Notes: a model not told the origin generated them from the letters alone. DNA of 64,000 nt from Macrostomum hystrix (GCA_950097015.1 CATNEN010000002.1:7068001-7132000); one strand, 5' to 3'. Numbered from the stretch's first letter, positions 1 through 45,200 are shown. Numbers and translations: made by a program.

Positions 1-20
1 TTCAATGTGTACAGTCTGTA

Positions 21-113
21 GTGCGCGCACATTCCCTAAAAAATATATAAGGCATGTCAGCTCTAATTTTAGAACGACGATCCTTATATATTTTTTAAGT
101 ATTGTGCGCGCAC
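21..113. repeat. Inverted repeat with 32-bp arms (3 mismatches) and GTGCGCGCAC outer ends
   Basis: 21-52 GTGCGCGCACATTCCCTAAAAAATATATAAGG is the near reverse complement of 82-113. Confidence 0.9.
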
Positions 114-332
114 TATGAACTGTACCTAAATCTAAAATTAAATTGCTTACTTGACTACTATAAGTAGAGCAGTTAGCAGCATTTGTTTAATAATTGTCAG
201 ATAAATCTATGGCTAATTAAATAATTCTATCAACAAAAACAATAAAGTATAATATTATCAACGGGAGTAATCAGTCAATCAATACAATCAATATTCTTAA
301 CTATAGCATATAATATCAATTATAATAACATT

Positions 333-370
333 AGCGTATAAAGCGCGCACATGTGCGCGCTTTATACGCT
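333..370. repeat. Perfect 38-bp palindrome
   Basis: AGCGTATAAAGCGCGCACA|TGTGCGCGCTTTATACGCT, checked base by base. Confidence 0.95.
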
Positions 371-600
371 GCAGTAACATGCAGTCAAACGAATTCAATT
401 ATCCCTCCCTCGAAGGCCTGTGCATGTTTTCTCTGCGTGTTTTCTCTCTGTCCCGGCCCCCTTTATCTGCCCCACGGTGTTTTTCACTCACTATTTAAAT
501 ATTTAATAATATTTTATATTATTAATATAATATAAATTAAATATTTTATATAAAATCTTAAATAAAGCAGGCAGACAGACAGGCGGGCAGGCAGGGCGAA

Positions 601-3600
601 TCAATCAAAATTATGCTCCGCCACTGAGTGCAGCCGCCGTCGCTTTCCGGCCACCGGTCTACCGTGCAGGACTGCGTCGGCTCGTTGGGTGCTCGCCGCC
701 ACCTCCCCACTTCCACCAGCCAGGCTGCTGATGAGTCCCTGGGTCGGCGGCCTAACTATTGGTCGCATCTCTGCGTCACCTGATGGCACCACAAACCGGC
801 GGACAATATCGCGGCTGCGAATTACTGTGCCCATCTCGGTGGCCATCTGGGCATTGTGCCCATAATTGTACCGGATGACAGCTGCAGATGTGCCGTGCGC
901 TCTGGCGAACATATCCAGCTGCTCCGGCTCCATCATGAGCACTACGGCACAGAGGGTGCGACGCCAGTGCGTGGCCACATAGTGCCGACCCAGTACTCGC
1001 TGCCCGCCTGCGCTGATCATGCGGCTCATTGCCGACTGGCTGTACACACCGCCGAACACATCAATGAAGACGGTCGGCGACTCCGGTTGCTCGATGCCGC
1101 GAGCAGCAAGCGACGGCACGATATATTCGTCGTGCAGGCGCAGCAAGGCCTCGCAGAATATATCCGGCAGCACCATCCTGGCTGGGTCGCCGGAGTGTCC
1201 GACCTTGTGCGGCACTTCACGCAGCGGCAGGACGAGATGCGAGTGCCCAGCCAGATCGGCAGCGGACGGCCCGCTCCCCCCATCTGCACTTTGCGTGTGT
1301 TGGCGGAACAGCTGTTTTTGGTCGGCCGACGCGTTTCGCCGAACCGAACGGTCGACCAGGTGTCGCCGTCTCAAGTATATCCACGGCAGAAGTCGCAGTG
1401 CCTGCTCGACGCTGCAGTAGAAAAGCATCTCCTGCACTATCCGCCGCAGACATCCGGCGACTGAAGGCGCCATCATCTGCTTCGCCGTTGTCTTTAGTGT
1501 CATCAGCGATGCCATCAGCGACCACACCTGCTGCCTGCATGCCCCATTCGCCGTCGACTGGCAGTGAAGACCAGCTGTGTCTTTGGAGCATGATGAAAAA
1601 GCGGTCTCGACGGGCGAACACGGCATCAACCTCGTCTACGTTGACGTAGGTGTTCATAAATGCCACCTGCCGCTCATTGTGGCCAAGCTTGTAGACGGCC
1701 TGCATAGTATAAATGTGGTTGCGTTTACTTCTAGTAGATAGCAGCACGAAACCAAATAGAACTAACTGTCATTAATGCAGCTGCTGTGCAGCTATAGCCT
1801 ACCTGCTGTATGGCTCGGACATTGCCGAACTCGCCACGAGCCTGCTGCACCACGCTGCTAAGGCGGGCGATGAGAGCCTGCTCAGCCGCCAGCGGGTTGT
1901 TGGCCTTCTGCGCCAACTGCATTCTCCAGCAGACGCCACTGCCGACAGAGTCGACGTCCTCAATAGCAGGGCGCTCGGTGTCAGGCGAGGGTGAGTCGAT
2001 GCTGCAGAACAGCTCGGCTTCGCGCAAGCCAACGGCGGCCATGATGGCATTGGCGCCTCGCAGGCCCCTCACGCGTAGCCAGCCCTCCATGCAGCGGCAG
2101 ATGCTGACAAGCTCCTGGCACTTGCGCGCAGCAGTCGACTGGGCCAGCTGCATGGCGTCACCGACTGTTTCAGCGCTGAAGCAGTCCTGCACCCTGTCCG
2201 GCTGAAGCAGCAGGTCTGCAAGCGATATGCCCGCTCGCTGCCAGGTGCGTAGAAGCGTCGAGCTCACGGACCTGCTGATGTCGCGCCAACGCTGCTGGTG
2301 GCACAAGTTGGCCGCAATCCTGGCCCGCGATGGGTCCCTCCACCATAGCTCCCGCAGGCGTTCCACCGTTGCGGAGATGCTGGGCCGGTCACCCAACGGC
2401 TGCAGCAGCTCTGGTGGCACGGGCTTCGCAGGTGGCGACGTGCGAAAGTGTCGACAGCGCGGACCGCGACGCTGTTGCTGCTGCTTCTGATCGGCTGTCG
2501 ACGCTTCCTGCTGCAGTTCTGCTCCGAAGATGGACTTTTGAAGCCGGTCGAATTCGGCACTGGCCAGTTTTATCTTCAACGCAGCCCACCTTGCTGCAGC
2601 TGCTCGACGCTGCCTCGGCGGAGTAGCTGCCAGCTTCACTAGCGGCCTCTGTGCAGCCGACACCACAGCCGATGACGTGCTGGGACGATTAAGCGCCGAC
2701 TTAGTGGCCTGCACCGCCAACTGCAGACAGGCAGCCGAAGAGGAAGACTCTGCTGCCACCGTATGGACCGTCGACAGAGTCCGCATTCTGATGCTGGTTC
2801 CGGGCAGTAGCTCCTGCAAGCCGACATTGTCATCTCCATCGTCAGCGTCCTCCTGTGAGGACATTAGCAGCAGCGGCGCAGTCGGGTCAAATAGGCGTCG
2901 CCGGACGGCTGGACGGCTGGCTGACGACAGCCGAGCACTGGCCGCTGACTGTCGACCGTAAACGGACGGCGCGGCGATGCTGTAGAGCTCGGCCAACAGA
3001 GACCCAGCCTCGTATTCAGCTGGTTCTGCCTCTGAAGGCTGCTGCGGAGGCGGTGGTGGCATCTGCTGCGGAGGCGGTGGTGGCATCTGCTGCGGAGGCG
3101 GTGGTGGCATCTGCTGCGGAGGCGGTGGTGGCATCTGCTGCGGAGGCGGTGGTGGCATCTGCTGCGGAGGCGGTGGTGGCATCTGCTGCGGAGGCGGTGG
3201 TGGCATCTGCTGCGGAGGCGGTGGTGGCATCTGCTGCGGAGGCGGTGGCTGCTGGTGTTCCACAGCAACGGTAGCAACAACAGCTGGCACTGCTGGACAA
3301 CTGTGCTGCCTTGCTGTCCTACGCAGCACCTTGCCGCAGGCTGGGCACGCATGTACATGCTCAGTGTTGGCTGAGCTGCGCGTGTGGGTGCTGCACGTCA
3401 GGCAGAGCCAGACCATCTGGGCACGCTGCTTGGCTGACGCCGCTGCCCAAGATGCCTCGGACGGCCGCACCTTGACTGGGGCATCCTCGAGTCGGAATTG
3501 GCGCACAGCCTCCTCCGCGTGCCTCCTCAGGAAGTGGCGTTTCGGGTGCGTCTGCGGTCTGCCGTCGCCACAGAAGATGCAGCACGACTCGTTGTCTGTC

Positions 3601-3602
3601 AT
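601..3602 (-). CDS. Intron-containing tyrosine recombinase (Crypton-like). Model complement(join(601..1460,1528..1699,1803..3602)), about 943 aa; an alternative start at 3701 is in frame
   Basis: The C-terminal part has YR-type motifs: HKVG (candidate Lys), ATHWRR (H/T-x-x-R) and AHGTSAAVIRY, where the Tyr is 9 residues after the His as in lambda Int/XerD. The N-terminus has CIFC, CLTC and CPAC..HSC Cys/His clusters. Three ORFs join in frame through GT-AG introns 1802..1700 (phase 0) and 1527..1461 (phase 1). The second intron is less certain; a frameshift is the alternative. Confidence 0.7.
3040..3250 (-). repeat. 21-bp coding tandem repeat (PPPPQQM, about 10 copies) inside the YR gene
   Basis: Unit GGCGGTGGTGGCATCTGCTGCGGA-like, in frame in ORF 1731..3701. 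Confidence 0.95.
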
Positions 3603-4883
3603 AGCTATTGTTATTACAAATTGATGCAGTGCCATATAGGTGTATGAACTGAATTCAGTATGCATGCAACACATGCTATATACAGTCCGTTGTGCGTGCA
3701 TCTAAATAAATATATATATGCCCCTTTATCCCATTATGGAATACACTATTTTAAGTGTTGTGCGCGCACATTGTCCCGTACTGTTGTCATCGCTGCTGCA
3801 TTTATATTCGATTGAGTGCTGCGTTGAGCACATAAATCACTTATTTTTCTGTTGTCCCTAACAACAACAACAACAACAACAACATCCCGGCTGTAAAAAT
3901 TATAAGCCTCTGAATCATTTATAAATTTTAAAAACAATTTTTCATTTGCAATGTAGTACAATCAGCTCAGACATTCGATTTTCCAGTGAACAGCACACCC
4001 ACCCCCTCCAACTCGATCTTCCTCCCTCAAAAGCAGTGCCGAGCCAGCCAGACAGACCTGCAGATGGAAAGAGAGACGACTTCGATCGTCTTCAGTCTAT
4101 GGCCACAGGGGTGACATTATCGATTGGTTAAAGCAGACACACTGCTTCTCTTTTTCAAGGCAGAGCAGTGGCCTTCCACACCCTTTTACCATAGACTATG
4201 AATTTAGAGACAGGGCCGCCCCCTTTCGCTTTCGAAGGTTTAAAGAAAGGGTGGCAAGCAAAGTAGCAGTCTTTTAGTTTTAGCCCGGCCCAACTGCTCG
4301 ATCGAACTGCAGCTTACAGTCAAATATAATTCAGAGATTCATCCACAATTCGAATCAACAGTCTGCCTTCTATTTGCTTGGACTATATTAAAACAGGCTA
4401 CAGATATAATATCGACAGAGAGCCACAGGATCTATTATTATGTCAACAGCAAGCATTAGGATCTAATATATTTCTAGGCAGCTCAGAACTGCATAACACT
4501 TACAGAGATTTCTAATATATTATAATTATAGAGAACTGCATGCGCTATTATCTATTAGATTAACAGACCGATTGTTATATGTATACAAATACTAATTGAA
4601 GGGCCTATTATATATACAAAGACTAATCTGAGGGCCTATTATATTAACACAGCTTGTAATGCATATTTATGAACAGATACTTATATGGCCTATTTAAAAT
4701 ACATAGCCTTTTTCTTATTTGCAGCGCAACAGACAGCATCAGCAGAAGCATCAGCAGAAGCAACCGACAGCATCAGCAGAAGCATCAGCAGTAGCAGCAG
4801 TAGCAGCTCAGTAGCAGCTCAACAGCTCTAGCAGCATCAGTACCAGCAGCCAGCCCCATCTGCCCGTGCCCACTTCGAGGTGC

Positions 4884-5340
4884 AGCAGAAGCAGCAGTAC
4901 CAGCAGCCAACCCCGTCCGCCTGTGCCCACTTCGAGGTGAGATAAAAATTAAATTGTACAGCTGGATAGCATTAGTTAGCCTCAGCAACTATATTCGAGT
5001 AGACTTTAGCGTCGAAATTATATTCTAATTGCTTTTTTCCATGCTCATCCTCAGCTCAGTGCAGCTAAACCGGCCGGCACCAGCCAGCAGCATCAGTAGC
5101 CGAAGCCAGCCCCGTCCGCCTGTGCCCATTTGCCAAGCAGCAGCAGTAGCAGCAATAGCAGCAGTAGCAGCAGTTGCAGCACAAGCAGCAGAAGCAGCAG
5201 TACCAGCAGCCAGCCCCCGTCCGCCTGTGCCCACTTCGAGGTGAGATAAATATTCAATTGTACAGCTGGATAGCATTAGTTAGCCTCTGCGAAATATAAT
5301 CGAGTAGACTTTAGCATAGAAATTATATTCTAATTGCCTT
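4884..5340 (+). repeat. Direct duplication of about 150 bp with CAG/GCA-rich low-complexity flanks
   Basis: 4884-5035 matches 5184-5340; both copies contain CCCACTTCGAG|GTGAGATAAA. Confidence 0.85.
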
Positions 5341-10715: not shown

Positions 10716-11040
10716 TTCATCGTCGTGTGTCTTACCGTGTGTATCATCGTCGTGTGTTTTACCGTGTGTATCATCGTCGTGTGTCTTACCGTGTGTATCA
10801 TCGTCGTGTGTTTTACCGTGTGTATCATCGTCGTGTGTTTTACCGTGTGTATCATCGTCGTGTGTTTTACCGTGTGTATCATCGTCGTGTGTTTTACCGT
10901 GTGTATCATCGTCGTGTGTTTTACCGTGTGTATCATCGTCGTGTGTTTTACCGTGTGTATCATCGTCGTGTGTTTTACCGTGTGTATCATCGTCGTGTGT
11001 TTTACCGTGTGTATCATCGTCGTGTGTCTTTTCGCGTGCA
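10716..11040. repeat. 27-bp minisatellite (ATCATCGTCGTGTGTTTTACCGTGTGT), about 12 copies
   Basis: Visible tandem array. Confidence 0.95.
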
Positions 11041-22899: not shown

Positions 22900-24738
22900 T
22901 CACTGTTCGCCGCACCAGAGCTGCAGCCGCAGGAACTCGGACCTGTCAATCACCCGATTGAACAGGGCCCAACAGGCAACGGTGCCTTTTATGCAGCGGG
23001 CATTGCTGTTGGGTTCGTAGCCGATCTTGACGCAGCCGAACCTGGCCGCGCTCACCTTGACGGTGCTGGATGCCCGAAGCAGCTGAGTGGCATTCAGTTG
23101 TCTGTCGTTGTAGAACAGGCCTTGGTAGTCCGTGCCGTTGAATATGGCTCCCATCGAGTGCGTCTCGGAGGCTGTGAACGAGCCGCTAGCCGTAAATAGA
23201 GTCAGAAATTTTGCTCCGGAAACATAATTAAAGCTAGCGGCCTCCAGGTACGTAGCTGCGTGGAACAGCCAGCCACCTTCGGTGGTACTGCCGCATGGTC
23301 CGATCGAGTGCAGCTGCTTTTCACTGCCAAATTAAGAACCAGTTGGCTCAACATTACAGCATATTCCGCACAGGTAATAAATAATGCGAGCATAATGATA
23401 CTTATAGCACGGCTAGGGGCCCAGAAAAAACGTTGGGTGTCAACGCGCAGCCAGCGAGGAGGCAATTCTACCCACTCCGCTGAATCACGAGTACACACGC
23501 ACACAGATACTGTACACACAGCTCACACTCTCATTGAGCCTTGAAGGCTAGCCCACAAAGGCACGACAAGCCCTCAAGCCTTCTTTACGCAGCTGCGCCC
23601 CATATAATTGTAGCCTCCCCATGGAATCGAGCTCAGGGACCTTGGTGAGACTGCTCATACGCATGATTATAAAAAGCTTTGCGACAAATTGAATAAAAAG
23701 ACGTAAAATGTTAGGTAAATAGTACACTAGTCTAAGTTTTATAAGGTGAGTTCCATGAATAGTTACATAAGAAATATATCAATATAATGCTCAGCATTTC
23801 ATCACTAACCTTCCCGCTGACATATTGTAGCGAGCCCAGGTGTACACCGAGTGTTGCCCGCCCGGACTGAACAGGCCGTACAGTCCGGACAGGTTGGCCC
23901 ACGCCTGCGAGTCCATTCTGCCGGCCAGGCTGAGTCCGACTCCATCGATTCTGCTGGCGGACATCAGGACGGGAGTTCGAGTCCCAGGGTGGGCCAAGTT
24001 GTCAGTGGAGAGACGGAAGTTGTAGAGAATCTCGGCGGAAGTGAGCAGCTGCTGGGACAGAGAGTCTGGAAGAGCGGCACTTTGTAGGTCAGTATTAACA
24101 GCTCAGGCTTCCTGACTGTCTCATCTGTGTCAGCCAGCAGCTCCCTGAATGTCTCGCAGCTCACCTGTGTTAGCCAGCAGCTCCCTGACTTTCTCACAGC
24201 TCACCTGTGTCAGCCAGCAGTTCCTGACTGTCAGCCAGCAGTTCCCGACTGTCAGCCAGGAGTTCCTGACTGTCAGCCAGGAGTTCCTGACTGTCAGCCA
24301 GCAGTTCCTGACTGTCAGCCAGCAGTTCCTGACTGTCAGCCAGCAGTTCCTGACTGTCAGCCAGCAGTTCCTGACTGTCTCACAGCTCACCTGTGTGTCA
24401 GCCAGCAGTTCCTGACTGTCTCGCAGCTCACCTGTCCACCGCATCGCGAAGGCCCGGCAGCCGCTCCGAAACCGCCAGTCGCGCGAGAACTCGCCCCAGT
24501 CGGCCAGGAAGCACGCGCCGCTCGCTTGAGAATGCACCGCCACGCAGCCCGACGTTCTGCGGCAGCGAAGCACGCAGGCGGCTGACAGAGCAGCAGAGGA
24601 GCCCTGAACTCCGACGTCGATGAAGGAGGACGGCTGGTGCAGGCCCGGCTGCGGGCAGCGTTCAGTGACAAACAACTGTGAGCAGCCGTCAGCCAGCAAG
24701 GCCAGCAGACTCAGGCTGAGCAGGGAGCTGAGATGCAT
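22900..24738 (-). CDS. PAN/apple + LamG/ConA-like secreted protein, copy B: exons 24738..24432, ~24101..23810, 23323..22900
   Basis: Exons 1 and 3 are open and the same length as in copy A. The strong exon-2 acceptor (AAAG at 24080) is out of phase; only a weak GAG acceptor at 24102 keeps the frame. It may be a young pseudogene. Confidence 0.65.
23455..23650 (-). mobile_element. SINE family A, internally deleted copy (intron 2 of copy B)
   Basis: Shares GGAATCGAGCTCAGGGACCTT and CACACGCACACAGATAC with 14645-15007. Confidence 0.75.
24125..24431. repeat. 21-bp intronic minisatellite (CAGCCAGCAGTTCCTGACTGT) with repeated splice-donor units
   Basis: Visible array; its mirror image lies at 34716-34950. 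Confidence 0.9.
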
Positions 24739-24964
24739 GCTTCAGTAACAGTGTGGGATTTTCGGTTTTCTGCTTCAATCCGGGCTGTTTATAGTGAGCT
24801 CCCATTGGGTCTACTTGCGCATCCAGTAACTAATGACCGTCCGTCTTTCGTTAAACAATTCAGCTGTACAATTTAGGTACGTTTTGCGATTTTTTTACTA
24901 CATGAGAAGTGAATGTAGTGTTTATAGCAAGAATATTTAAATAGTTTAGAATTTAAATTTGTCT

Positions 24965-25285
24965 TCACCCCGCAGCACCCCACTCCTCACACTGCAGCCA
25001 CCTCACTCCTCACACTGCAGCCACCTCACACTCCTCACACTGCAGCCAACCCACTCCTCACACTGCAGCCACCTCACACCTCACACTGCAGCCACCCCTC
25101 TCCTCACACTGCAGCCACCCCAGTCCTCACACTGCAGCCACCTCACACCTCACACTGCAGCCACCCCTCTCCTCACACTGCAGCCACCCCACTCCTCACA
25201 CCGCAGCAACCCCACTCCTCACACAGCAGCCACCTCACACTCCTCACACCGCAGCAACCCCACTCCTCACACCCAGCTACCCCAC
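24965..25285. repeat. Degenerate CTCACACTGCAGCCACC minisatellite
   Basis: A shorter inverted copy lies at 34070-34155. Confidence 0.85.
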
Positions 25286-25974
25286 AAAGCAGTTTGGGTT
25301 TGGATTAGGAAAATGACAAAGCCTGTTTAAAAGAAAGGCGTCTACTCGAAAGAAGCATTTATTCCAGTACTTTCCTTCACTAGCACGCGCATTTTAGGTG
25401 CCTCCGATTCAAGTATTTATTTGTACACAAGAAACCTATCGCCTGGCTTTTCCATAGAGAAATTTACTTTAAATTACAATATTTAAATTCAAACAGGGAA
25501 AGGTACATAACAGTAAAAAAAGATAGAGACAAATTACTGGCCGATCGGGTTTAGGCCTGATAGAACACACAGGACATAAATCAAGGCAGTTTAAAGTGCT
25601 TTGAAAAACATCTAAATATTAAGATCGATAACATAGGAAAACAGTCTAACTATTGCCGGCCGGTGTTCAAGTCAGAGGCATACAATGCAGCATGCAAACA
25701 AAATACCCGAGCGAAATGAACAAAGATAAATAAAAAAGAAATAAATGAAGACAGAATTCAGCGCATACATAATTAATTACTGGTAAGCTAATTAGTTAAT
25801 TTTTAAGACAATCAGCTAATAAATATGGATAGGCGGATAAATATAAAGCAGGTATATGCATTCAGAGCATAGAAGAACATTCAAAACGATTTCTGCTAAA
25901 AATAATAGAAGCTAAGCAGTAAAACGGCTGATAAGGCTCACTGACTGCCGACTGACATGGCCAATCACCTGGCC

Positions 25975-28228: not shown

Positions 28229-29809
28229 TCAGTAGGGCGCGATCAGCTCCCTGATAATATCCTGCAGTTTGCCCAGCACCTCCGATCTCACATGACCGAT
28301 GGAAGGCAGGATGCGATCGATCTGGGCTTGCAGCTCCGGCACAAATGCCTGCGACTGGCCCTGGGAGCGGTACATGCCCTGCACCGTCTGTACTCGGTCG
28401 CGCAGCTGTGCGTGAGCCTCCTCAGGAGTACAGGTCTCATTGCTCATGGCCAGTGCTACCCGCTGGACACTCGAGGCCAGCTCTGCTGCGCATTGGTTCA
28501 GTGTGGGCCTGGCCTGCTGCTGCTGCTGCTGCTGCTGGATGTGAGTGAAACTTTGCTGCAACTGCTGCTGTTGAAGCTGCTGCTGCTGCTGTTGCTGGTG
28601 CTGCTGAGCCAACTCCTGAAGGCTGGAGAGAGACACAGGCACCGCGCCCTGCGGGGTGACAGCAAGTAGGGCCACGGTGCCCGGTGGCAGGCAGGGCAGG
28701 AAGCTGGCGGGACCTCCTGTGCTGCCGGCGGGCCCCATTATTGGCAGCATGATCGGCTGCTGCTGCTGCTGAATTGGCTGCTGCAACTGTTGCAGCTGGT
28801 ACTGCGGCAGCTGCTGCAATTGCTGCAACTGCATGGGCTGAAGAACTGACTGCGGCAATAGCTGCTGCTGCTGCTGACTAACTATCATCATTTGCTGCTG
28901 CAACTGCTGCGGCTGCTGCTGTGCCTGCTGCGGGTGAACAGCTAGCTCCTCCTGCTTTGGCTGCTTTATGATCGCCGCTGCCGACTTTTTCAAAGGCTGC
29001 TTGGCGGCAGCGGGTGCCGAAGTTGACGGCCTGTCAGCCTGTTGCTGAGCGGCTTTGGCCGACTGCACCCTCAGCTTCTCCTGTGGAGTTCAGTGAGAAA
29101 TGGGATAATTTCATGTTAATTTTTTCCCACAAATCTAAAAGTTAATGGTGTGAGCGGTTAACGCGTTTGCCACCTGCATTTGGGCGCAGTCACGGATAAA
29201 GGCTTGGGGGCTTGTCTTGCAATTTAATAACTCCCCAATTCCCACAGTTCCACATAGTCAATAACTCCCCAATCCCCACAGTTCCACACAGTTAACAACT
29301 CCCCAATCCCCACAGTTCCACACTGTTAACAACTCCCCAATCCCCAGTTCCAGACAAACCTGAAAAGCTCGGTAAGAATCTGTCTGCTTGTAAGCCGTCA
29401 TCTCCTTCTCGTAAGCCTCCATGGCCTTCTTGTACAGGTCTGAGTAGCGCTCTTTCTCCTCGGTGGACAGGTCCCTCCACTGCTGGGCTACCACTTTGAT
29501 CTGATCGCGGCCTTTGAGCTTGAGGTCGGGCGTATCCCGGATGTGCACGCCCAGCTGTTCCATTCGCTCCTTAACGAAGATGGTATAGGCTGATCGAGGG
29601 TTTATCGGCTCCTGCGGGTCGCGGCGCGCCCTCCGCGATCGCCGGCCGAAGCCGATCGGCTTGCGCGGCTTCGGCAGACGAGGCGCGGCAACGGCGGTGT
29701 CGCTGGCGGACAGCTCGGCTGCTACGGCGTCATCTTCGCTGGCTGTTGGGCCTCCGTCGCCGCCGGCGCCCCGGCCCGTCACGCCCTCAATGATTTGCGT
29801 TAGAGACAC
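28229..29809 (-). CDS. HMG20: HMG-box protein, HMG20A/B (iBRAF/BRAF35)-like, complement(join(28229..29080,29360..<29809)); true start not visible
   Basis: HMG box RDPQEPINPRSAYTIFVKERMEQL...WRDLSTEEKERY...YKQTDSYRAF. Phase-0 intron CAG|GTTTGT...CACAG|GAG. Gln-rich linker and a C-terminal EVLGKLQDIIREL helix resembling HMG20. Confidence 0.75.
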
Positions 29810-29908: not shown

Positions 29909-30300
29909 TAGAAATAACTGCTACCCTACTAGCCATAGAGATGAAATAACTGCTACCCTACTAGCCATAGAGATGAAATAACTGCTACCCTACTAGCCAT
30001 AGAGATGAAATAACTGCTACCCTACTAGCCATAGAGATGAAATAACTGCTACCCTACTAGCCATAGAGATGAAATAACTGCTACCCTACTAGCCATAGAG
30101 ATGAAATAACTGCTACCCTACTAGCCATAGAGATGAAATAACTGCTACCCTACTAGCCATAGAGATGAAATAACTGCTACCCTACTAGCCATAGAGATGA
30201 AATAACTGCTACCCTACTAGCCATAGAGATGAAATAACTGCTACCCTACTAGCCATAGAGATGAAATAACTGCTACCCTACTAGCCATAGAGATGAAATA
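29909..30300. repeat. 32-bp minisatellite (GAAATAACTGCTACCCTACTAGCCATAGAGAT), about 12 identical copies
   Basis: Visible tandem array. Confidence 0.95.
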
Positions 30301-31345
30301 AATATTCCGATTCAACTAAGATGATGTCCAATGGACTTCCTAATACATCGAAGACAGTTGTGGCATCGGAGAGATAAAATATTCACTATATTCTTACCTT
30401 AGTATCTGCTTAATTTATACTTTTAAGATTATGAAAACCACTATGGTTAATATTTTAAAGTAAATATTACATAAAAAATATGAAACAAGAGAAATAATTT
30501 TATTTGATAATATGTAGCAGGATTATTATGATGATATAATCTCTTTATAATTACTCCCCAAATGCTAACACCTGCAAAGTTAATTGTTTTATTATTTACA
30601 TGGATAATAATTGTAAATTATGTACTTAAATATTTAACTTAAAGAACATTTACTATGCATCAGATAATAAACTTATGTGATGGCACATGATCTGTGATGG
30701 CACATATACTAATAATGTTGTTAGTAGTGTTCAGTGTGAACATATAAAGTACATTAAGAACAAGGGCTTTGCATGACTACAACTAAATGTTAAATGTTCT
30801 GTCAGTAGCATAAACATTTTTAATTTTCAATTGGACTTTAAATACTTAAAATAATTACATTTTTATATGCTTTATTGCTTTTAATAAAATATGATATACA
30901 AACAACAGTCTTTTTAAGCAGAATGTGTTATATATTTAAAAAATTATAATGATCAGTTTTGTTGTGATGTATATGTTTCTGCATGTCACTCTGGCATGAA
31001 CTGGCATGCAACTAAAAAGTGGTATAACCTTGGCATACAATTTATATTTTCCCCATTTTCCTTCTAAAGTTCTGGCATGCACCTAACATGATCTAGACTA
31101 TGGGGCCACATCACAGAGTCAAGCTTAGGGGCTCTGGTGCAAGAGACAAACACATTAGACTGCTCTCTCCTGGCCACTAATAATTGCGATTGATATTCAA
31201 AGTTACAAAATTATATACAACAATATAATGCATGCCCCAAATTCTCCAATTAAATCACAATGTCAGACTTAGATGATACATTCAGACCTTAACATTTTTT
31301 AACATAAGGCTATTAAATGACTAAAAAGTAGGGCTCGGTCGTGAT

Positions 31346-31626: not shown

Positions 31627-34304
31627 GTCGTGATCATGATTACAAATTTGTGATTTCACGACTAATGGAATCACGATTGTGATTATTTTCTTACTCATGA
31701 AAATTGCATCGTGATTTTTTACTACTTTTTGTCATTTTTCATGACCCATCAATACTTTTTTTTATGGAAATTTTGGGAATCCAAATGCAAGTACTATAAT
31801 CTAGAATTTTGTTTTATTGATATAATAGCACATCTACAGTACAAATCCTTTCAATTTCAGATGGCTCAAAGATATCAACTTATTAACACTGGATGAAGAA
31901 TCTAAAGAAAGATAAAGAAATCAAAGCGGCCATCTGCTTTCTCGGTCGTCCATCTTGGAAGACAGAAGTGTTCAACTTGCCTCACAACTTACAAATGGCA
32001 GCAATGCACAATTGTTGATTTATTTTTTGTTTGGATGAAGACATTTGGTGCGAGCACAAAAAGATGTAGTGAGCAGAATTGAGAGAAGAATTGCGAAATG
32101 CAAATTAAAGCACAATTGTTGACTATTTAGTATTCTAGTATTTTAGAATCTAGTATCTATCTATATACAATCTATAGATAGTTATGACTTCTTTGCCAAG
32201 TTGCTATCCTTTATTGATTATTTGATATATATATATATCTAATATCCATTATCATTAATTTAAAAGATAACCAGATTATTTGATAAATCTTATCATTTTC
32301 TCTATCTTATCTATTATTTGATTGACATATTGGGCAATGTTCTATTTCTATTCATTATATTATTTTTTTGTTTGCAATTGACAGATAACGACAAAAAACT
32401 AGTTTAGGCCTAACAGTAACAAAAAGTCAGTAGTTTGGTCACACAGTTCTGAAAAGTCTTGGTCAGTCTTTCTTCTTTCAAACCGGGTAATAGTGCCTAA
32501 TCCAGTAGAGGAGGGCACCAAAGCTATTCTTGGGGTATAGACGGCGCCATAAGAATTCTTCGAGGTGGCATTCAAATATAATACTGATTATAATACAATC
32601 AGAGTTTAATGTTGAACTCTTGATTGCAAGCCACAAAGTTTAAGTTAGGCCTAGTTAAGAATTGAAGGCAATTTTAGAGGTAATAATGACACACTGCCAT
32701 ACTCTCTTCATGTTCTGTTAAAATTCTATGCATCAGATAATAAACTTATGTGATGGCACATGATCTGTGATGGCACATATACTAATAATGTTGTTAGGCC
32801 TAGTAGTGTCCAGTGTGAACATATAAAGTACATTAAGAACAAGGGCTTTGCATGACTACAACTAAATGTTAAATGTTCTGTCAGTAGCATAAACATTAGT
32901 TTGGTCACACTAATATAAATTGTATGCCAAGGTTATACCACTTTTTAGTTGCATGCCAGTTCATGCCAGAGTGACATGCAGAAACATATACATCACAATA
33001 AAACTGATCATTATAATTTTTTCAAGCGAAAGTCAATAAATACAGTATAAAATAATTTATAAAAAATATTGAAATATAATACTTTTCTTTTTTAACTACA
33101 CGTTAAATATATATTATCTAGTTCATTCTTAATATTAAGATCTAAGTCAATGAACGCGAAATTTAAATTTAGAAATGCAAAATGCACTCAAGGGTGACAT
33201 ACACGATTTATTATATCAGCAGTAATTAATTAAAACTAATCTTAAATGGAAACTGATGCTTTTAATTTACTCTTTGCGTGGACATGGTACCGTTCGTACA
33301 CTTCTACCCTGACCGTACGCCAGGAATATGTACATTAGGTAAGTACATGACACTTTATTTATATTAAGAAATTCTTAAACGGCAGCAATTTAAAATTTGT
33401 TCATAGAAAAAGAATGTTGATAAAAACAAAGTTTGCAAGTAGATTTAAGAAATATTTATATTTCGATGCAAAACTGGAACTAAATGTTCTGTTTAAACAA
33501 ATATTACACAAATAATAATAAATACTTTTCAGTCTAAAATAGCGTGAAGTCGGGACGGGTCTTCACCCTGTCTTCGAAATACCTGGTACTTGACCATTGT
33601 ATGTTTTGTGCTTTAACTTCGTCTTGAAATGTTAAGATGCATTGCATTGATAATATATGCTCTGGAAGTCTAGAATTTAATGCGCATTTCATGTTACTTT
33701 TAACTAATTTTAACATAATGTTTATGTCCTATTAATTTTAATTTGACATATGTATAGTTGACTGGTATCAAACGTAAGGCAGTTATTTACTCCTGCCAAG
33801 TACAAACAGCAACTTTCGGTCTTCCTCTAACCTTAACAAAATAGAAAAGCATATTAAATGCGTTTCATCGTTAGTTTTAGTTTTTAGTTTGGAACTTAGA
33901 AATCTGACTTTTTCCTCTACTTTGTGTTCAGTCCAAAGGACAGAAACACGCTTGTTTCCTAAGTCCGAGATTCCTTGAGACTTAAAAAAATTCCCCTTCC
34001 CTGAACTATCTTTGTGGGAAAACTAAGCGATCCAAGCCTGACTACCCGGTTGCTCCACTGCTAAAGAATGCTGCAGTGTGAGGAGTGGGGTAGAGCTGCA
34101 GTGTGAGGAGTGGGGTGGCTGCAATGTGATGAGTGGGGTGGCTGCAGTGTGAGTTGTGGGGTGGCTGCAGTGTAGGGAGAACTTTTAGTTCTGAACTATT
34201 TAAATATTCTTACTAGAAGCACTACATTCACTAATAAAAAAATAAACAATCGAAGAAATTTACTACACTTTTACAGCTGAATTGTTTAACCTAAGGCGGA
34301 CGTT

Positions 34305-34355
34305 CATTGGTTACTGGATGCGCAAGTAGACCCAATGGAAGCTCACTATAAACAG
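34305..34355 (+). promoter_or_regulatory. CCAAT boxes and TATA box of PAN-LamG copy A, conserved in copy B at about 24790-24830
   Basis: CATTGG, ACCCAATGG and CTATAAA lie 55-105 nt upstream of the ATG in both paralogs. Confidence 0.5.
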
Positions 34356-34408
34356 CCCGAATTGAAGCAGAAAACCGAAAATCCCACACTGATCACTGAT
34401 CCTGAAGC

Positions 34409-36610
34409 ATGCATCTCAGCTCCCTGCTCAGCCTGAGTCTGCTGGCCTTGCTGGCTGACGGCTGCTCACAGTTCTTTGTCACCGAGCGCTGCCCGCAGCC
34501 GGGCCTGCGCCAGCCGTCCTCCTTCATCGACGTCGGAGTTCAGGACTCCTCCGCTGCTCTGTCAGCCGCCTGCGTGCTTCGCTGCCGCAGAACGTCGGGC
34601 TGCGTGGCGGTGCATTCTCAAGCGAGCGGCGCGTGCTTCCTGGCCGACTGGGGCGAGTTCTCGCGCGACTGGCGGTTTCGGAGCGGCTGCCGGGCCTTCG
34701 CGATGCGGTGGACAGGTGAGCTGCGAGACAGTCAGGAACTGCTGGCTGACAGTCAGGAACTGCTGGCTGACAGTCAGGAACTGCTGGCTGACAGTCAAGA
34801 ACTGCTGGCTCACACAGGTGAGCTGCGAGACAGTCAGAAAGCTGCTGACTCACACAGGTGAGCTGCGAGACAGTCAGAAAGCTGCTGACTCACACAGGTG
34901 AGCTGTGAGACAGTCAGAAAGCTGCTGACTCACACAGGTGAGCTGTGAGACAGCCAGGGAGCCAGAATATTTTCTGCAAAAATCTACAAACCTTTATTGT
35001 TTAAAATTTTTTTCTTTTTTGTTATTTGCTTGAGTTGATTTTATTAAGAAATCAAATTTGCCCTTCTCTCCCGCCCCTTCTCTCCCTCCGCCCCTTCTCT
35101 TCTTCAGCCGCAGGGAGCATTCAGGGAGGATGCAGGGAGGATGCAGGGAGGATCCAGGGAGGATGCAGGGAGGATGCAGGGAGGATCCAGGGAGGATGCA
35201 GGGAGGATGCAGGGAGGATCCAGGGAGGATGCAGGGAGGATGCAGGGAGGATGCAGGGAGGATGCAGGGAGGATGCAGGGAGGATCCAGGGAGGATGCAG
35301 GGAGGATGCCTAGGCGTCAGCGAAAATAGGACGAATGGCCCTCTATTTAGCATTAAATCATCAGCAGAATCCGGCCTTCCAGACTCTCTGCCCCAGCAGC
35401 TGCTCGCTTCCGCCGAGATTCTCTACAACTTCCGTGTCTCCACTGATAACCTGGCCCACCCTGGGACTCGAACTCCCGTCCTGATGTCCGCCAGCAGAAT
35501 CGATGGAGTCGGACTCAGCCTGGCCGGCAGGATGGACTCGCAGGCGTGGGCCAACTTGTCCGGACTGTACAACCTGTTCAGTTCGGGAGGGCAACACTCG
35601 GTGTACACCTGGGCTCGCTACAACCTATCGACCAGGTAAGTGGGGTTTTAATCATGAATGTCTAGATATCTGAAAAAAATGTTGTTTTCTTCTGCCTAAA
35701 GACCCAATAGAGGCCTCAGGAGCCACACAACCCCTCAGGAGCCACACAACCCCTCAGGAGCCACACAACCCCTCAGGAGCCACACAACCCCTCAGGAGCC
35801 CACAACCCCTCAGGAGCCACACAACCCCTCAGGAGCCACACAACCCCTCAGGAGCCACACAACCCCTCAGGAGCCACACAACCCCTCAGGAGCCACACAA
35901 CCCCTCAGGAGCCACACAACCCCTCAGGAGCCACACAACCCCTCAGGAGCCACACAACCCCTCAGGAGCCACACAACCCCTCAGGAGCCACACAACCCCT
36001 CAGGAGCCACACAACCCCTCAGGAGCCACACAGCCCCTCAGGAGCCACACAACCCCTCAGGAGCCACACAACCCCTCAGGAGCCACACAACCCCTCAGGA
36101 GCCACACAACCCCTTTAGAAGCCACACAACCCTTCAGAAGCCGCAGTGTTGCATTGTGCATCGTTTTGCCAACCTAATTTTTTAAGTGGCACGCAGCTGC
36201 ACTCCCTCGGTCCATGCGAAAGTTCCAACGAAGGTGGCTGGCTGTTCCACGCAGCTTCTTACATCGAGGCCGGAATCTACAATCCGATCGGCGGAGTGAA
36301 GTTCCTGACGGTGTTAACTAACACCGGCTATTTCAGTGGCTCCGAGACGCACTCAATTGGAGCCGCATTCAACGGCACGGACTACCAGGGCCTCTTCTAC
36401 AACGACAGACCGCTACCTGCTGGCTCGCTGGTTAGGACATCCAGCACCGTCACGATTAACGAGGCCAGGTTCGGCTGCGTCAAGATGGGTTACGAACCGC
36501 ACAGCGATGATCACTGCGTCAAAGGCACCGTTGCCTGCTGGGCTTTGTTCAATCGGGTGATTGACAGGTCCGAGTTCCTGCGACTGCAGCTCTGGTGCGG
36601 CGAACAGTGA
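34409..36610 (+). CDS. PAN/apple + LamG/ConA-like (pentraxin-like) secreted protein, copy A, join(34409..34715,35365..35635,36187..36610), 333 aa
   Basis: Signal peptide; ACVLRCRRTSGCVAVH...GACFL is PAN-like. The C-terminal GLFYND...RFG...VKGTVACWALFNRVID...LWC resembles a LamG/pentraxin end. Introns are phase 1 and phase 2; total 1002 nt. Confidence 0.8.
35123..35307. repeat. 11-bp minisatellite (GGGAGGATGCA)
   Basis: Visible intronic array. Confidence 0.95.
35715..36142. repeat. 19-bp minisatellite (CTCAGGAGCCACACAACCC)
   Basis: Visible intronic array. Confidence 0.95.
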
Positions 36611-39237: not shown

Positions 39238-42200
39238 CTATAGAAACACTCCGTCGGACTCTTCGTCAACGCTGTCCGCCGGGGGACTTCTCTCGGCCGA
39301 GCCCGCCACCGAGCGGTGATGCAGCTGCACCGGCTCGTCGAATTCGAAGCCAAAGTTTGTCTGTGTCTGCGCGCACGACTGCGACTGGGAGCTGGTCCTG
39401 GGCTCCAAAGCCAGCTCCTTGGCAGACGACAGCCGGCGTCGATTCTCCAGGTAGGCGGATATTGTCTCCAGCACCTGGCGCCGGTGCAGCTTCTCCTTGC
39501 TCTCCCTGCAGAACATTCGCAGCCTGGAGACAGTGTACAGGTACGGATTCAGAGCCGAGTTGATCGGCAGCGCGAATATCACGAGGCCGGTGGTGGTTGT
39601 GCGAGAGATTTTGTAGCCGGACGAGACAAGAAGAAACAGAACAATTGTTGGCAGCCAGCAGATCAGGTCAGTCAGGACCAGCAGAAACAGCCGGCGAGCC
39701 ATCAGGTGATCGATGTCCATGGCTTTGCGCTTCGCCTTGCGGCGAGTGTTTTTCAGGTGCAGGAACACGCGCAGGTAGCAGCCAGTCATGAAGGCGAACG
39801 CGGCGCAGTTGTACACAATGGCAACCAGCTGCGGCAGTCGCTGGATCATGGAAATCTGACCGTCAAGGTAGAAAGGCGAGCAGGCAGCGTTCAGATTGTA
39901 CGGCATGATCTTCCTCACCGTGGCGGACAAAGCCAGCAGCGAGAAGCCGGTCGCAGCCAGCCACGTGACCGCCACCACGGCAGCCACCCTCTGCAATGTC
40001 CAGCCGTGCTTCTTGAAGCGCTGCACGGTGAGCTTGAAGCGATCAAAGGACAGGAAGGCCAGGATAGTCACCGACACTTCGCTGCTGACCGTGGCCAAGA
40101 TCGCGCACACGGTGCAAAGGCTTGACGCACGCCACTGGTCGTCGTGAGCAATGTACTCGTGTCGATAAGACGTGTCAGTGCCGGCAATGATGAGCAAGTA
40201 GACAGCCATGAGCAGGTCGGCCAAGCTCAGATTGAGAATGAGAAAGTCCGTGGTTTTTTTAAACAGCTTCTTCACTAGGCGCCACGCGATGACGAAGAGA
40301 TTTCCAACCAGCGCGAGGCAGCCGAAGATCCAGACCATGACCTGCTGAGCCAGGTCTCCCAGAAGGTCATCGCACGAGCTGAAACCGTCGGCTGGCGGCG
40401 TGCAGTTCACGGCCACGACGTCAGCCAGGCAGCAGAACTTAAAGGAGTCGGTGTACAGGTTGTCCAGCCGCTCCAGCTTGGAGAAAGTCCTGATGGGAAT
40501 GAAGACGTCCGGGCCGGTGCCAGACAGGTCCAGCACTCGGAGCTGCCTCGGCCCGCCCTCGAAAGCCAACTCGTCGATAGTGACCAGCGGGTTTCGGCTG
40601 AGGTTGAGGTGCCGCGTGTTGTTGCTGCCGTAGAAGGCGTAGCTGGGCAGGCTGACGATGCTGAGATTCGACAGGTCGAGCTCCGCCACCAGCGGCAGGT
40701 GGGCGAAGCCGTAGCTCTCGATGCTGACGATCGGGTTGCCTCGAATGAGCAGCGTGGTGAGCCGCACCAGGCCGGACCAGACATTGCTGGGCACGGAGGC
40801 GATCTCATTGTTGCTTAAGTCCAGGTAGCGCAAATTGGCCAGGCGGGAGAACAGGCCAGCCGTGATCTCCTTGATGCCGGCGCTGCGCATCTCCAATAGG
40901 CCGAGGAGCGCCAGGTGGTCGAAGTCGCCAGGCCTGGCAGACAGCTGCGTATTGCCGCTGAGGTACAGGGCTCTGGTCAGGGGTGACACAGTCTGGTTGA
41001 TGTTGAAGCTCAGAGGACGCAGGCACTCGGTGATATAGCCGCGGCAGTTGCAGGGCTGGCGGCACTGCATGTCGCAGAAGGCCTCGTCCTCGGCATACCG
41101 GCAGTGCGGCACGCCATCGCAAGCGTTTTCGACCGGGACGCTGATGACAAGAGGCCGCGGGGTGGCGTGTGGACTGAGGCAGCGAAGGTGGCCGGCCAGC
41201 TGCGAATTCGTTCAAGGGGTTGTTGGTCAACTACTTGCCGATTATCCCAAAATTCCGCCTCGCGGAATCCCATACTCCTCATCCCGAAATCCCGAAATCC
41301 AACATACTAAAATACCACACCCAAAAGTCCCGCATTCTAAAATCATCTGATCTCACATTGCTATATCCCACACCTCAATATCCCACATCCCAATATCCCA
41401 CATCCCAATATCCCACATCCCAATATCCCACACCTCAATATCCCACATCCCAATATCCCACATCCCAATATCCCACATCCCAATATCCCACATCCCAATA
41501 TCCCACATCCCAATATCCCACATCCCAATATCCCACATCCCAATATCCCACATCCCAATATCCCACATCCCAATATCCCACATCCCAATATCCCACATCC
41601 CAATATCCCACATCCCAATATCCCACATCCCAATATCCCACATCCCAATATCCCACATCCCAATATCCCACATCCCAAACATCCCGAAGACGTGAACCTC
41701 ACCAGCGGTGGCTGCTCGCAGTCGATTTCGTCGGCACCATCGCTGCAGTCCTGCATGCCGTCGCACAGGCGGTAGACTGGCAGGCAGTAGCCGGCCGGAC
41801 ATTGGAACAGGCGCCGGCAGCCGAATGAGGCGCCGCCGCCGGCCCCGCAGCTGCGCAGGTGCTCCATGTTAGGGCACACCTGCTTGCCGAACTGCCGCCT
41901 GTCGAAGACGCAGGCATTGTTCCTCGGGAAGCACTTGACGTGGTTGAACATGCAGCGCTCCCATTGGCTGTCCGGACAGTCCGGGAACTCCAGCGAACCT
42001 GGATCGATGACGTTCTCGCCGCGGGTGCAGTTGTTGGCCCGCAGGCAGGTCATGGCTTCGTCCTCCAGGAGGCTGCCGGGACAGTCGACCTGCGTGTCGT
42101 TCACCAGGCCGTTGGGAATGCAGCGGCCGCTCAAGCAGGAGAAGCCGTTGCAGATGTTGCAGTTCTGCTCGTCGCTGAGGTCCTGGCAGTCGCTGATCCC

Positions 42201-45200
42201 GTTGCAGCTGGTAGCAATGGGAAAATTTTCGCTGATTGTACTCAAGTAAGCACTGCGATTCATATTATCCTAGCATGAAGTCTAAAAGAGCATTCACAGT
42301 AGAAAGACTATAGGGGCATTTCCAATACACACATTTTCCGTAGTTCTGTATCTCCCAAAATATTGAACCAATCGCCATGAAAATCCAGAACACGGGCTCA
42401 AATTTTCCGCTCTATGCAACGAAACAGCTTCCAGAATTACAAAACATCGGCATCATCGAGATATTCAATGATTCTCGTCGGGGTGTCTGATGGCAAAAAC
42501 CATTGATACAGCAATGTACTGATTATATCGTTAAAGAATCGCTGAATATATCGACGATGCTGACGTCGCACAGCTTTGAAATTTAGTTCATCGTAAAGAG
42601 GGTAAAATGTATCCGTTTAGTTGACTTTCACGAACAAATTTCATTCAGTTTGGGGTTGGATATTTGAAACTCCACTCGTGGTCTTTCTACTGTTTCTCGT
42701 TATCTCTTATCAAAGAAAACTCATATTTAATTAAGCAAAGGTGTAAATCAAATATTGACACCGGCTTGTTATTTCGGGTTATCCGGTGTTTTCCAATAAT
42801 ACGAAATTATTACCGGTCAGTGGCCTTTGGAGATATTTTTGACCTCCATTCTCATAGACATTTTTAGAACTGCGGCCTAGCATTATAAAGCACAGGTCGG
42901 CAAAGCTATGTCTCGGAGAAGACGAAATCCAAGAAAGATGAGACAAGGGAGAGTCAAGGGACAATGGAGAGATGAGACAGGGAGAGATGAGACAGGGGAG
43001 AGATGAGACAGGGGAGAGATGAGACAGGGGAGAGATGAGACAGGGGAGAGATGAGACAGGGAGAGATGAGACAGGGAGAGATGAGACAGGAAGAGATGAG
43101 ACAGAGGAGAGATGAGACAGGGATGAGATGAGACAGGGAGAGATGAGACAGGGAGAGATGAGACAGGGAGAGATGAGACAGGGAGAGATGAGACAGGGCA
43201 GAGATGAGACAGGGAGAGATGAGACAGGGAGAGATGAGACAGGGGAGAGATGAGACAGGGAGAGATGAGACAGGGGAGAGATGAGACAGGGATGAGATGA
43301 GACAGGGATGAGATGAGACAGGGGAGAGATGAGACAGGGGAGAGATGAGACAGGGAGAGATGAGACAGGGGAGAGATGAGACAGGGATGAGATGAGACAG
43401 GGAGAGATGAGACAGGGAGAGATGAGACAGGGAGAGATGAGACAGGGCAGAGATGAGACAGGGAGAGATGAGACAGGGAGAGATGAGACAGGGGAGAGAT
43501 GAGACAGGGAGAGATGAGACAGGGGAGAGATGAGACAGGGATGAGATGAGACAGGGATGAGATGAGACAGGGGAGAGATGAGACAGGGGAGAGATGAGAC
43601 AGGGAGAGATGAGACAGGGGAGAGATGAGACAGGGATGAGATGAGACAGGGAGAGATGAGACAGGGAGAGATGAGACAGGGAGAGATGAGACAGGGAGAG
43701 ATGAGACAGGGAGAGATGAGACAGGGGAGAGATGAGACAGGGAGAGATGAGACAGGGGAGAGATGAGACAGGGATGAGATGAGACAGGGATGAGATGAGA
43801 CAGGGGAGAGATGAGACAGGGGAGAGATGAGACAGGGGAGAGATGAGACAGGGATGAGATGAGACAGGGAGAGATGAGACAGGGATAAGATGAAACATGG
43901 ACAGATAAGTCAGCCAGGAGCTCAGCCAGCTTTGCTCACCGCTGATCACTCGAGATGCACTCCATGCTGCGCTTGCAGCGGAACTCGCCAGCTCTGCAGG
44001 CCTCGAACTGGCAGTTGGCCTCATCCATGCCGTTGCTGCAGTCTACCCGGTGGTCGCAGAGCCTTGACCAGGTGATGCGCTCGGAGTCATTGCTGCCGCA
44101 CTCGAAGAACTGATCCACAATGTCCGAGCTGCAAGCCATTTCGTCTTCTCCGCCTGAAGCAAAATGGTCTCGATTTGAGTTCTGTGATTTATTAACTTGT
44201 CGGCGCAAGACTCTTGGAAGACAGAAATCTTTTTAGACAAAAATCTTGGCTAATTCGCTTAAAATCAGCAATTTTCAATAAATTTTTCCACTTCAATTGA
44301 GAAAAGAATTTATAGATTCGCCCACTCACTCGGACAGTCCTGCTTTCCGTCACACAGTCCGTCGCTGCTAATGCAGGTGCGATCCAGGCAGGCAAACTGG
44401 TTGCTTCGGCAGCCCACCTGCTGAGCCACGGGGCTGCGCACGCACAGCACGGAGCGAGTCGGCAGTTTGTCGATCTGGCCGTCCTTCCGATGACGTCTCG
44501 ATGACGAGGTCGACAATGAGGCGTGGTTGAATAGCGTCGCGGTTCTATCACTCAGGCTCTCCGGTCCTTGTCTAGATGTCGTCCGAGTGAAGACGTCCGA
44601 CAGATCGTCCTCATCAGCCTCAGCGCCAGCAGATGCTTCGTCAGCGAACAGGGTCCGGTCGGAGGAGAACACGAAAATGCGGCCCCGCTGCACCGAGTAG
44701 CGCCAGACGCGCAGCATGTCATTGTACGGCTTCTGCTTTCCGGGCTCCTTCGGCAGAGTGGCAATCTGGCCATTGAGCTGCTCACACATGAGCCCGGCAT
44801 TCTCCAAGGTGAGCTCGGGCTCCACAGCGCTACTGTTCTGTGTGAGCAGCATGTAGCACTGCCGCTCATGCTCCAGCCAGTTGTCGGTGCAGGCCGGGCT
44901 GTCGGATCGGATTTTCACCATTTGCTGCTGGAAGTGGCGCTCAAGCTGGCTCTTTTGGTTCGTGTCGTCCGTTGACCGTTCGCAGATGTGGCTCTGGCCC
45001 TTGATCTCGATGTTGCAGGGCACCTTGATCCAGTTTGAGTGGTGCCGCGGGTTGTGCAGCATCATTCCCACACAGGGATAATTGGGATCATTGCTCGGCT
45101 GCGGGAACTCCTCGTTGATGAAGGCCTGGACGTTCGGCGAGGACCGTGAATAGACAGTCTCGTAGTGCGAGGGGTACCACTCGTGGAAGATGAATGGCTC

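Follow-up and report, generated by a model that had tools for sequence, protein, structure and literature searches.

The window analysed here is a stretch of 64,000 nucleotides (64 kb) from the animal Macrostomum hystrix (GCA_950097015.1 CATNEN010000002.1:7068001-7132000), read as one strand from 5' to 3'. This report deals with a locus in its first 3.8 kb. The minus strand of 601-3602 carries a gene of three exons, whose 943 codons can be read from the sequence without interruption, and the gene lies between two long palindromic units that are related to each other. The C-terminal part of the encoded protein resembles, in several respects, the catalytic domain of the tyrosine recombinases (YRs). 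A preliminary description of the window, made from the sequence alone, had interpreted the locus as a candidate YR transposon, Crypton-like or of a new family, enclosed by 21-bp direct repeats and lacking both reverse transcriptase (RT) and terminal inverted repeats (TIRs). Our results show that the locus is apparently an intact, spliced, single-gene unit without RT, bracketed by related repeats that are found nowhere else in the window.

The gene model agrees with the preliminary description, which had spliced three open reading frames (ORFs) into about 943 aa and had considered the gene possibly intact. Both introns have canonical GT..AG splice sites and the ORF is uninterrupted. The GC content of intron 1 is 41%, compared to about 62% in the exons. 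The gene stops 475 bp short of the left palindromic unit, and no overlapping ORF is present. The absence of RT likewise held: searches of family libraries found neither RT nor any other domain in any exon or in the right-flank ORFs up to 12 kb. These profile searches, like the structure predictions discussed below, were run exon by exon.

Exon 1 encodes, from the N-terminus onwards, a series of Cys/His clusters, the PPPPQQM repeats, a low-complexity stretch and a helix-rich region (about residues 400-600). The clusters and the PPPPQQM linker had both been pointed out before, and both are present, the linker as eight repeats. The two Cys/His clusters, CCxxC..H..H followed by CxxC..HxH.CxxC, are located within the first ~100 residues and show weak matches to zinc ribbons (E 0.05-0.2). 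A word-indexed homologue search found no homologue of residues 330-600 of exon 1, and sequence and profile searches of the PDB returned only a spurious match to a designed repeat and low-complexity matches.

The two long units share a common architecture. The left unit starts with GTA/CAGT and stops with ACTG/TAC (the slash marks the edge of the unit), and each of its arms contains a 23-nt motif that holds the box GTGCGCGCAC. Folded as single-stranded DNA, this unit reaches -35 kcal/mol (z -10.3). The right unit is homologous to the left one over both arms, while the loops are unrelated and the units differ by 20-30%. Both are flanked by TA (TA/CAGT...ACTG/TA on the left, TA/CAGT...CCCG/TA on the right), a form that presumably recalls miniature inverted-repeat transposable elements (MITEs) derived from Tc1/mariner, and that we take as a lead only. 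A third, shorter palindrome of 38 bp follows about 230 bp past the stop codon, before the left unit is reached. It corresponds to the outer ~19 nt of the unit arms, placed head to head.

The direct repeats of the preliminary description are part of this architecture. Positions 93-113 and 3749-3769 are indeed identical at 20 of 21 nucleotides, the longer stretches 93-125 and 3749-3781 at 27 of 33 (BLAST E 3e-4 within the window), but these repeats are only one arm of the larger palindromic units. Because the 21-mers sit in palindromes, the terminal repeats are both direct and inverted, and 21-41 is 81% complementary to 3749-3769. Hence, the earlier statement that the locus has no TIR fails.

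The 23-nt motif has the consensus nTACAGnnnnTAnnGCGCGCACA. Its six copies form three inverted pairs, two in the long end units and one in the 38-bp palindrome inside. The box GCGCGCACA occurs six times in the 64-kb window, where 0.46 occurrences are expected, and all six lie within 23-3770; none of 100 shuffled sequences reached this number. Identity between the six motif copies is 89% in the 9-nt box, versus 50% at the other 14 positions. Since the box is better kept than the rest of the arms, the copies look like constrained binding sites rather than decaying duplicates. The calculated probability that three palindromic structures fall by chance within 3.8 of 64 kb is about 0.01. A literature search with the 10-nt box matched only unrelated primers. 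The coordinates of all features of the locus are collected in Table 1.

Table 1. Features of the locus, in window coordinates; minus-strand features of the gene are given in the direction of reading, and residue numbers refer to the translation of exon 3.
Feature	Position	Strand	Description
Left palindromic unit	9-125		117-bp imperfect palindrome; arms 9-52 and 82-125, 44 nt, 86% complementary; 29-nt loop
Perfect palindrome	333-370		38 bp, no spacer; two motif copies fused at their CACA ends; fold z -6.4
Right palindromic unit	3680-3781		102 bp; homologous to left unit over both arms; arms 3680-3720 and 3749-3781
Exon 1	3602-1803	-	600 codons, begins MTDNESCC
Tandem repeat in exon 1	3039-3248	-	24-nt unit, 8.8 copies, 100% identity; encodes PPPPQQM (eight perfect peptide repeats)
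Intron 1	1802-1700	-	103 nt, GT..AG, in-frame stops inside
Exon 2	1699-1528	-	57 codons plus first base of a split Val codon
Proposed intron 2	1527-1461	-	67 nt, GT..AG, phase 1
Exon 3	1460-601	-	stop at 603-601; in-frame reference window:604-1458:-, 285 aa; YR-like domain
K85 codon	1204-1206	-	between two predicted beta strands; kept in the three sequences covering the site; candidate beta-hairpin lysine
R166-R167 codons	958-963	-	invariant; start of a predicted helix; candidate second catalytic arginine
Y199 codon	862-864	-	about residue 857 of the full model; sole tyrosine invariant in the five family members; candidate nucleophile

When 1.84 billion representative proteins were searched exhaustively with exon 3 by phmmer, four relatives were the only matches (E 4e-18 to 3e-6), all of them fragments on metagenomic contigs of 0.6-2.4 kb. 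A single co-assembly, made from brackish microbial mats of the Etang de Berre, contributed three of the four (P0001-P0003, JGI 3300040801), which are mutually divergent paralogues with identities of 36-63%. Using the family as query, a profile search by word-indexed homologue search recovered two of the known fragments and no further member; scans of metagenome and viral contigs with family alignments found no relatives, and tblastn against phages gave only noise. All homologues have basic C-terminal tails resembling nuclear localisation signals, and exon 3 ends in a basic tail as well, as would be expected for nuclear proteins. On the contig of P0002, an ORF of 220 aa is located upstream and overlaps P0002 by 4 nt in another frame; it may be the missing N-terminal half, split off by an intron or a frameshift. 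The family's small size and patchy occurrence are what would be expected for an element from eukaryotes that have been sampled poorly, and not for a conserved host gene.

The alignment of exon 3 with its four homologues contains eleven invariant residues: L156, R158, R166, R167, P178, L181, D182, T190, S191, Y199 and G200 (residue numbers, including those of R22 and K85, follow window:604-1458:-). Along the alignment, this gives the pattern L-x-R, then RR, P-x-x-L-D and T-S, and finally Y-G nine residues past the Thr. Further upstream, R22 is located in a helix and is kept in the two sequences that reach that far. The preliminary description had recognised YR motifs of the form K, HxxR and H-(+9)-Y. 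These strings are present in exon 3 as K85, H164..R167 (HWRR) and H188..Y197, and the lysine is conserved. However, neither H164 nor H188 is conserved, and it is Y199, not Y197, that the family retains. The position three before R166 is T, Y or M in the family, and the H/W position is an invariant Thr. From this conservation, a candidate active site can be proposed that consists of R22, K85, R166, T190 and Y199, with Thr in place of the canonical His/Trp. The spacing of R166, T190 and Y199 (24 and 9) is close to that of R292, W315 and Y324 in Cre (23 and 9).

The predicted structures, though of low confidence, suggest the same. Both AlphaFold (AF2) models, of exon 3 and of its homologue P0001, show a helix with the Arg, a beta-hairpin with the Lys, a helix, a small beta element and four helices, where RR opens one helix and the Tyr closes the last short one. 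This order of a helix, a beta-hairpin and helices is canonical for YR catalytic domains, as in the structures of Cre and XerD. The exon 3 folds probably lack the N-terminal edge of the catalytic domain, which may start in exon 2. In Foldseek comparisons with the PDB, XerA and XerH occupied ranks 1-5 of the sub-threshold list for the exon 3 model. For P0001, 18 of the 38 matches listed, again sub-threshold, were XerH, Cre, Tre, XerA, a Staphylococcus aureus (MRSA) integrase or Tn1549 Int. Integrases and Tyr-recombinases also appeared, sub-threshold, at ranks 3, 4, 6, 10-12, 14-16, 26 and 32 when P0001 was compared with BFVD (11 of the top 32), including a match to an algal-virus protein with a Tyr-recombinase domain (root-mean-square deviation 2.7 A over 59 columns).

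A greedy hhalign alignment paired R22 with Cre R173, and K85 with Cre K201. With a profile of 20 Cre-family sequences, hhalign gave Prob < 1%, inside the column-shuffle null, and comparisons with single Cre or lambda Int sequences gave noise. This test is uninformative, because the control lambda Int, a true YR, also fails against the same profile (Prob 0.3%). The YR relatives gathered for the profile were near-identical copies of Cre and lambda Int, too narrow a set for a broad profile. Thus, where the preliminary description had named profile or structure searches as the check on a YR fold, the profile searches came out negative and the structure searches suggestive, though below threshold. 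The conserved residue order, the spacing, the predicted secondary structure and the sub-threshold Foldseek lists lend weak support to the earlier identification of the protein as a YR, which no sequence or profile search recognised. Given these results, we lean towards a YR fold for the domain.

We interpret the locus 9-3781 as a self-contained recombination module, one copy of an undescribed eukaryotic YR-like element, and assign this reading a probability of roughly 0.4. The 943-aa protein would combine an N-terminal zinc-binding region with a highly divergent C-terminal YR-like catalytic domain, and would bind the 23-nt motif. Bound to inverted motif pairs, it would bring two sites together in a synapse, and strand exchange would proceed via a covalent 3'-phosphotyrosine formed by Y199. 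If the end units, which are directly oriented, recombined with each other, a circle with the gene and one unit would be released while the other unit stays behind; the reverse reaction would integrate the circle. A bolder version of this reading is a new eukaryotic YR-like superfamily, spread over an animal and eukaryotes of brackish mats, with a histidine-free R-K-R-T-Y active site, an N-terminal zinc-binding module for DNA recognition, and hairpin-capable palindromic ends built from the 23-nt motif; in this full form we consider it quite improbable.

Several observations weigh against a mobile YR-like element. As a palindrome, the right unit falls far short of the left one (fold z -2.5); its arm 3680-3720 carries a degenerate box with two mismatches, and its arm 3749-3781 a perfect 12-nt box. 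The arms pair best inside the left unit, not across the units. Only a single copy of the locus is visible within the 64-kb window, and the remaining 60 kb contain no unit-like sequence or solo unit. Codon usage of the gene is host-like, as in neighbouring genes (r 0.86 for relative synonymous codon usage), and so is the GC content at third codon positions (GC3). Intron 2 is the weak point of the gene model. Its GC content of 55% is exon-like, without compositional contrast to the exons, and two frames stay open together over 412 nt at the junction of exons 2 and 3 (1217-1629, minus strand). The frame switch may thus reflect either the intron as modelled or a frameshift instead of splicing. As for the protein, both canonical histidine positions are unconserved in the four homologues. 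Exon 3 and the four homologues gave no YR match in Pfam (including PF00589, Phage_integrase), NCBIfam or PHROGs (E <= 1-10), and no solved YR was matched in sequence and profile searches of the PDB with E up to 10. Confidence in the AlphaFold models is low (pLDDT 44 for exon 3 and 53 for P0001), and none of the Foldseek matches is significant (all E > 0.1, best E 0.17, TM <= 0.28).

Part of this pattern would also be produced by a non-mobile host gene restricted to this lineage, which possibly encodes a domesticated nuclear zinc-finger protein derived from a recombinase. Its flanks would then be copies of Tc1/mariner-type MITEs or regulatory palindromes, perhaps bound by its own product. The right unit is degraded next to an intact ORF, as if the gene and not the ends were under selection, and the divergence of the two units with their unrelated loops, the host-like codon usage and GC3, the presence of introns, the single copy in 64 kb and the presumed MITE likeness of the TA/CAGT.../TA edges are in agreement with a host gene. 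The absence of both canonical catalytic histidines also fits, as domesticated Crypton derivatives have lost catalytic residues (PMC3212892). Yet no orthologue was found in any annotated animal proteome among 15 billion proteins. Moreover, a dispersed MITE family would not be expected to have all six motif copies gathered around this gene and none in the rest of the window (p about 0.01), and conservation of the box greatly exceeds that of the remaining arm sequence. Homologues of only about 30% identity also retain the candidate nucleophile Tyr, both Arg and the Lys, which speaks against this reading. On balance, we find a host gene of this kind somewhat unlikely.

The protein might also be no YR at all, but an orphan, fast-evolving nuclear protein in which R, K, RR and Y resemble a YR by chance, next to palindromes that are unrelated local repeats. 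Such a coincidence would have to explain why YRs, a very small fraction of the libraries, lead or are heavily enriched in three independent Foldseek lists, and why the conserved residues agree with a YR catalytic domain in order, spacing and secondary-structure context over its full length. Consistent with it are the negative sequence and profile searches, of which the hhalign test has no power because lambda Int also fails in it, the non-significant structural matches to low-confidence models, the lack of conservation at two of six canonical active-site positions, and the 63 residues from R22 to K85, against 28 in Cre, which call for an insertion. We regard a chance resemblance as clearly unlikely. 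Alternatively, the locus could be part of a larger element that extends to the left of the window, either a DIRS-like YR retroelement with its RT off-window or a TIR transposon with a captured gene. The left unit begins only 8 bases into the window, which covers the locus and its right side, so that the left neighbourhood is unseen, and the arms at the two extremes (9-52 and 3749-3781) amount to imperfect TIRs. However, neither the locus nor the ORFs up to 12 kb to its right contain an RT, RNase H, methyltransferase or DDE domain, the gene ends well before the left unit without an overlapping ORF, and the repeats are unlike the split direct repeats of DIRS and Ngaro elements or an inverted terminal repeat with an internal complementary region (PMC13465315). 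A larger element thus seems very improbable.

Four other candidates were considered and rejected. An HUH/Y1 transposase was suggested by an HVH string in the zinc cluster, but a downstream Tyr motif is lacking and no HUH family matched. The terminal hairpins and the size of 3.8 kb would fit an integrated parvovirus- or densovirus-like genome, but no NS1 or VP match was found. A Helitron is excluded by the lack of Rep/helicase. Finally, hybrid attL/attR sites from integration into an existing palindrome are at odds with the arms pairing best within the left unit rather than across the units.

The remainder of the window contains various other features. Its coding regions are GC-rich, its spacers are AT-rich, and CpG is not depleted. 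Minisatellites are dense, with 46 rows of score >= 100 from Tandem Repeats Finder (TRF) and units of 7-249 nt; several are 98-100% identical, for instance at 10717-11027, 29911-30301 and 35714-36142. Scans for tRNA genes and Rfam families found none in the window. A tandem duplication of about 304 bp (90-96% identity) at 4830-5340 looks like a Gln-rich exon with a GTGAGA donor and the start of an intron. A large inverted duplication relates 22900-25300 to 34000-36610, in blocks of up to 437 nt that are 80-97% complementary and partly consist of 21-, 23- and 40-nt minisatellites. It encloses about 9 kb with an HMG-box ORF (29261-29809), an AT-rich core at 30-34 kb (GC 0.31-0.34) and a further inverted repeat of 114 nt (30935-31048 / 32912-33025, 98%). 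Taken as a whole, this structure might represent a large TIR or foldback-type element. On the minus strand of 39241-49043, exons for CUB (46629-49043), LDLa (44313-45230), and LRR plus rhodopsin-type seven-transmembrane (7TM) domains (39241-41112) look like one gene for a G-protein-coupled receptor of the LGR/relaxin-receptor type, with minisatellite arrays of 15-, 16- and 31-nt units between its exons at 41363-41678 and 42936-43913. An interstitial array of GGGTTTG / GGGTTTGGGTTTGGGGTTTG, with about 19 copies at 49378-49509, is telomere-like in look. Also on the minus strand, 58341-59132 contains the exon for the C-terminal part of the autophagy E2-like protein Atg3, roughly three-quarters identical to human ATG3 over 122 residues. 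This degree of identity marks the window as animal but not human DNA, and its genes have a structure like that of invertebrates.

Eukaryotic DNA elements that are moved by a YR are few, namely Cryptons, Starships and Tec elements, and their ends and mechanisms are poorly defined. To our knowledge, no animal Crypton has recognisable terminal sites. If the locus is indeed a YR-like module, it would offer a candidate recombinase paired with delimited candidate sites, including a minimal 38-bp perfect palindrome, so that the mechanism could be tested in vitro. It would then represent a possible compact site-specific recombination system of eukaryotic origin. The R-K-R-T-Y active site and the palindromic ends would be variants not described for Cryptons, DIRS/Ngaro elements or Starships, and the former would imply that a YR active site can dispense with both histidines while the family stays under constraint. 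Conversely, a host gene with MITE-like palindromes would be an ordinary orphan gene of little significance. The locus is odd and provides a testable pairing of a protein with candidate sites, but what is most important about it is based on one copy and on evidence below threshold.

Several known systems share part of this architecture. If only the end units are considered, they show a putative resemblance to Tc1/mariner-derived MITEs in their length of about 100-117 bp, their long TIRs starting with CAGT and the TA on both sides. They differ from a MITE family in that the other 60 kb contain no further unit, a DDE transposase is lacking, and the units share their box with the 38-bp palindrome, all clustered around one gene. 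Telomere resolvases (TelN, TelK, ResT) are related to YRs and act on perfect palindromes with alternating purine-pyrimidine centres; the boxes of our locus, which are alternating GC-rich palindromes, may resemble them. In contrast, no sequence or profile match to TelK, TelA or ResT was found, no resolvase appeared in the Foldseek lists, and the locus shows no evidence of hairpin-ended DNA.

DIRS, Ngaro, PAT and VIPER elements are, like the element proposed here, eukaryotic and encode a YR, and their terminal repeats are unusual, including inverted or split ones. However, DIRS, Ngaro and VIPER elements add an RT and have split direct repeats or layouts of inverted terminal repeats (ITRs) with internal complementary regions (ICRs) (PMC13465315). 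Their RT and RNase H, often accompanied by a methyltransferase, have no counterpart in our locus or its right-flank ORFs. Likewise, the ITR with an internal complementary region or the A1...B1A2B2 layout of DIRS and Ngaro elements differs from the paired palindromic units found here.

The preliminary description had proposed a Crypton-like element or a new YR family. Cryptons, divided into the groups CryptonF, CryptonS, CryptonA and CryptonI (Goodwin et al. 2003; Kojima & Jurka 2011, PMC3212892), have a YR as their sole enzyme and lack TIRs and long repeats, with direct repeats of 4-6 bp in the fungal and oomycete families and none in the animal families (PMC3212892). Our locus resembles them in that a single recombinase-like protein is its only coding capacity, without RT, and introns are possible in both. 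Cryptons also occur in animals, and their proposed movement via an excised circle and site-specific integration is similar to the mechanism suggested above. Yet the ends are very different, as repeat-free Crypton ends contrast with palindromic end units of 117 and 102 bp in direct and inverted orientation, plus an internal 38-bp palindrome. Moreover, Crypton YRs retain R-H-R-Y and are related to DUF3504. In the protein described here, both His are unconserved, and searches of the Pfam family profiles gave no match, neither to DUF3504 nor to DUF3435 or Phage_integrase. The N-terminal zinc-binding region is not a described Crypton feature either. Because the sequence relationship and the terminal structure both fail, and only a recombinase-like gene without RT is shared, the locus should not be filed as a Crypton.

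A parallel may be found in Cre/loxP, Flp/FRT and XerH/difH, where a recombinase gene is likewise located beside short sites of two inverted binding elements. The 38-bp palindrome is of the size of a lox site and, like lox and FRT, has inverted arms of ~15 bp around a centre of 6-8 bp. In addition, XerH, XerA and Cre are the top structural neighbours of the protein, albeit sub-threshold. The differences are that no sequence similarity is detectable, that the host of our locus is an animal, and that the boxes within an end unit lie about 75 bp apart, far more than a crossover region of 6-8 bp. The 38-bp site has a palindromic centre and would therefore confer no directionality. Directly repeated sites that flank a segment permit its excision as a circle in Cre/lox-type systems. 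With its inverted-element sites flanking the recombinase gene in direct orientation, the locus could therefore work like a module of the Cre/lox or Flp/FRT type.

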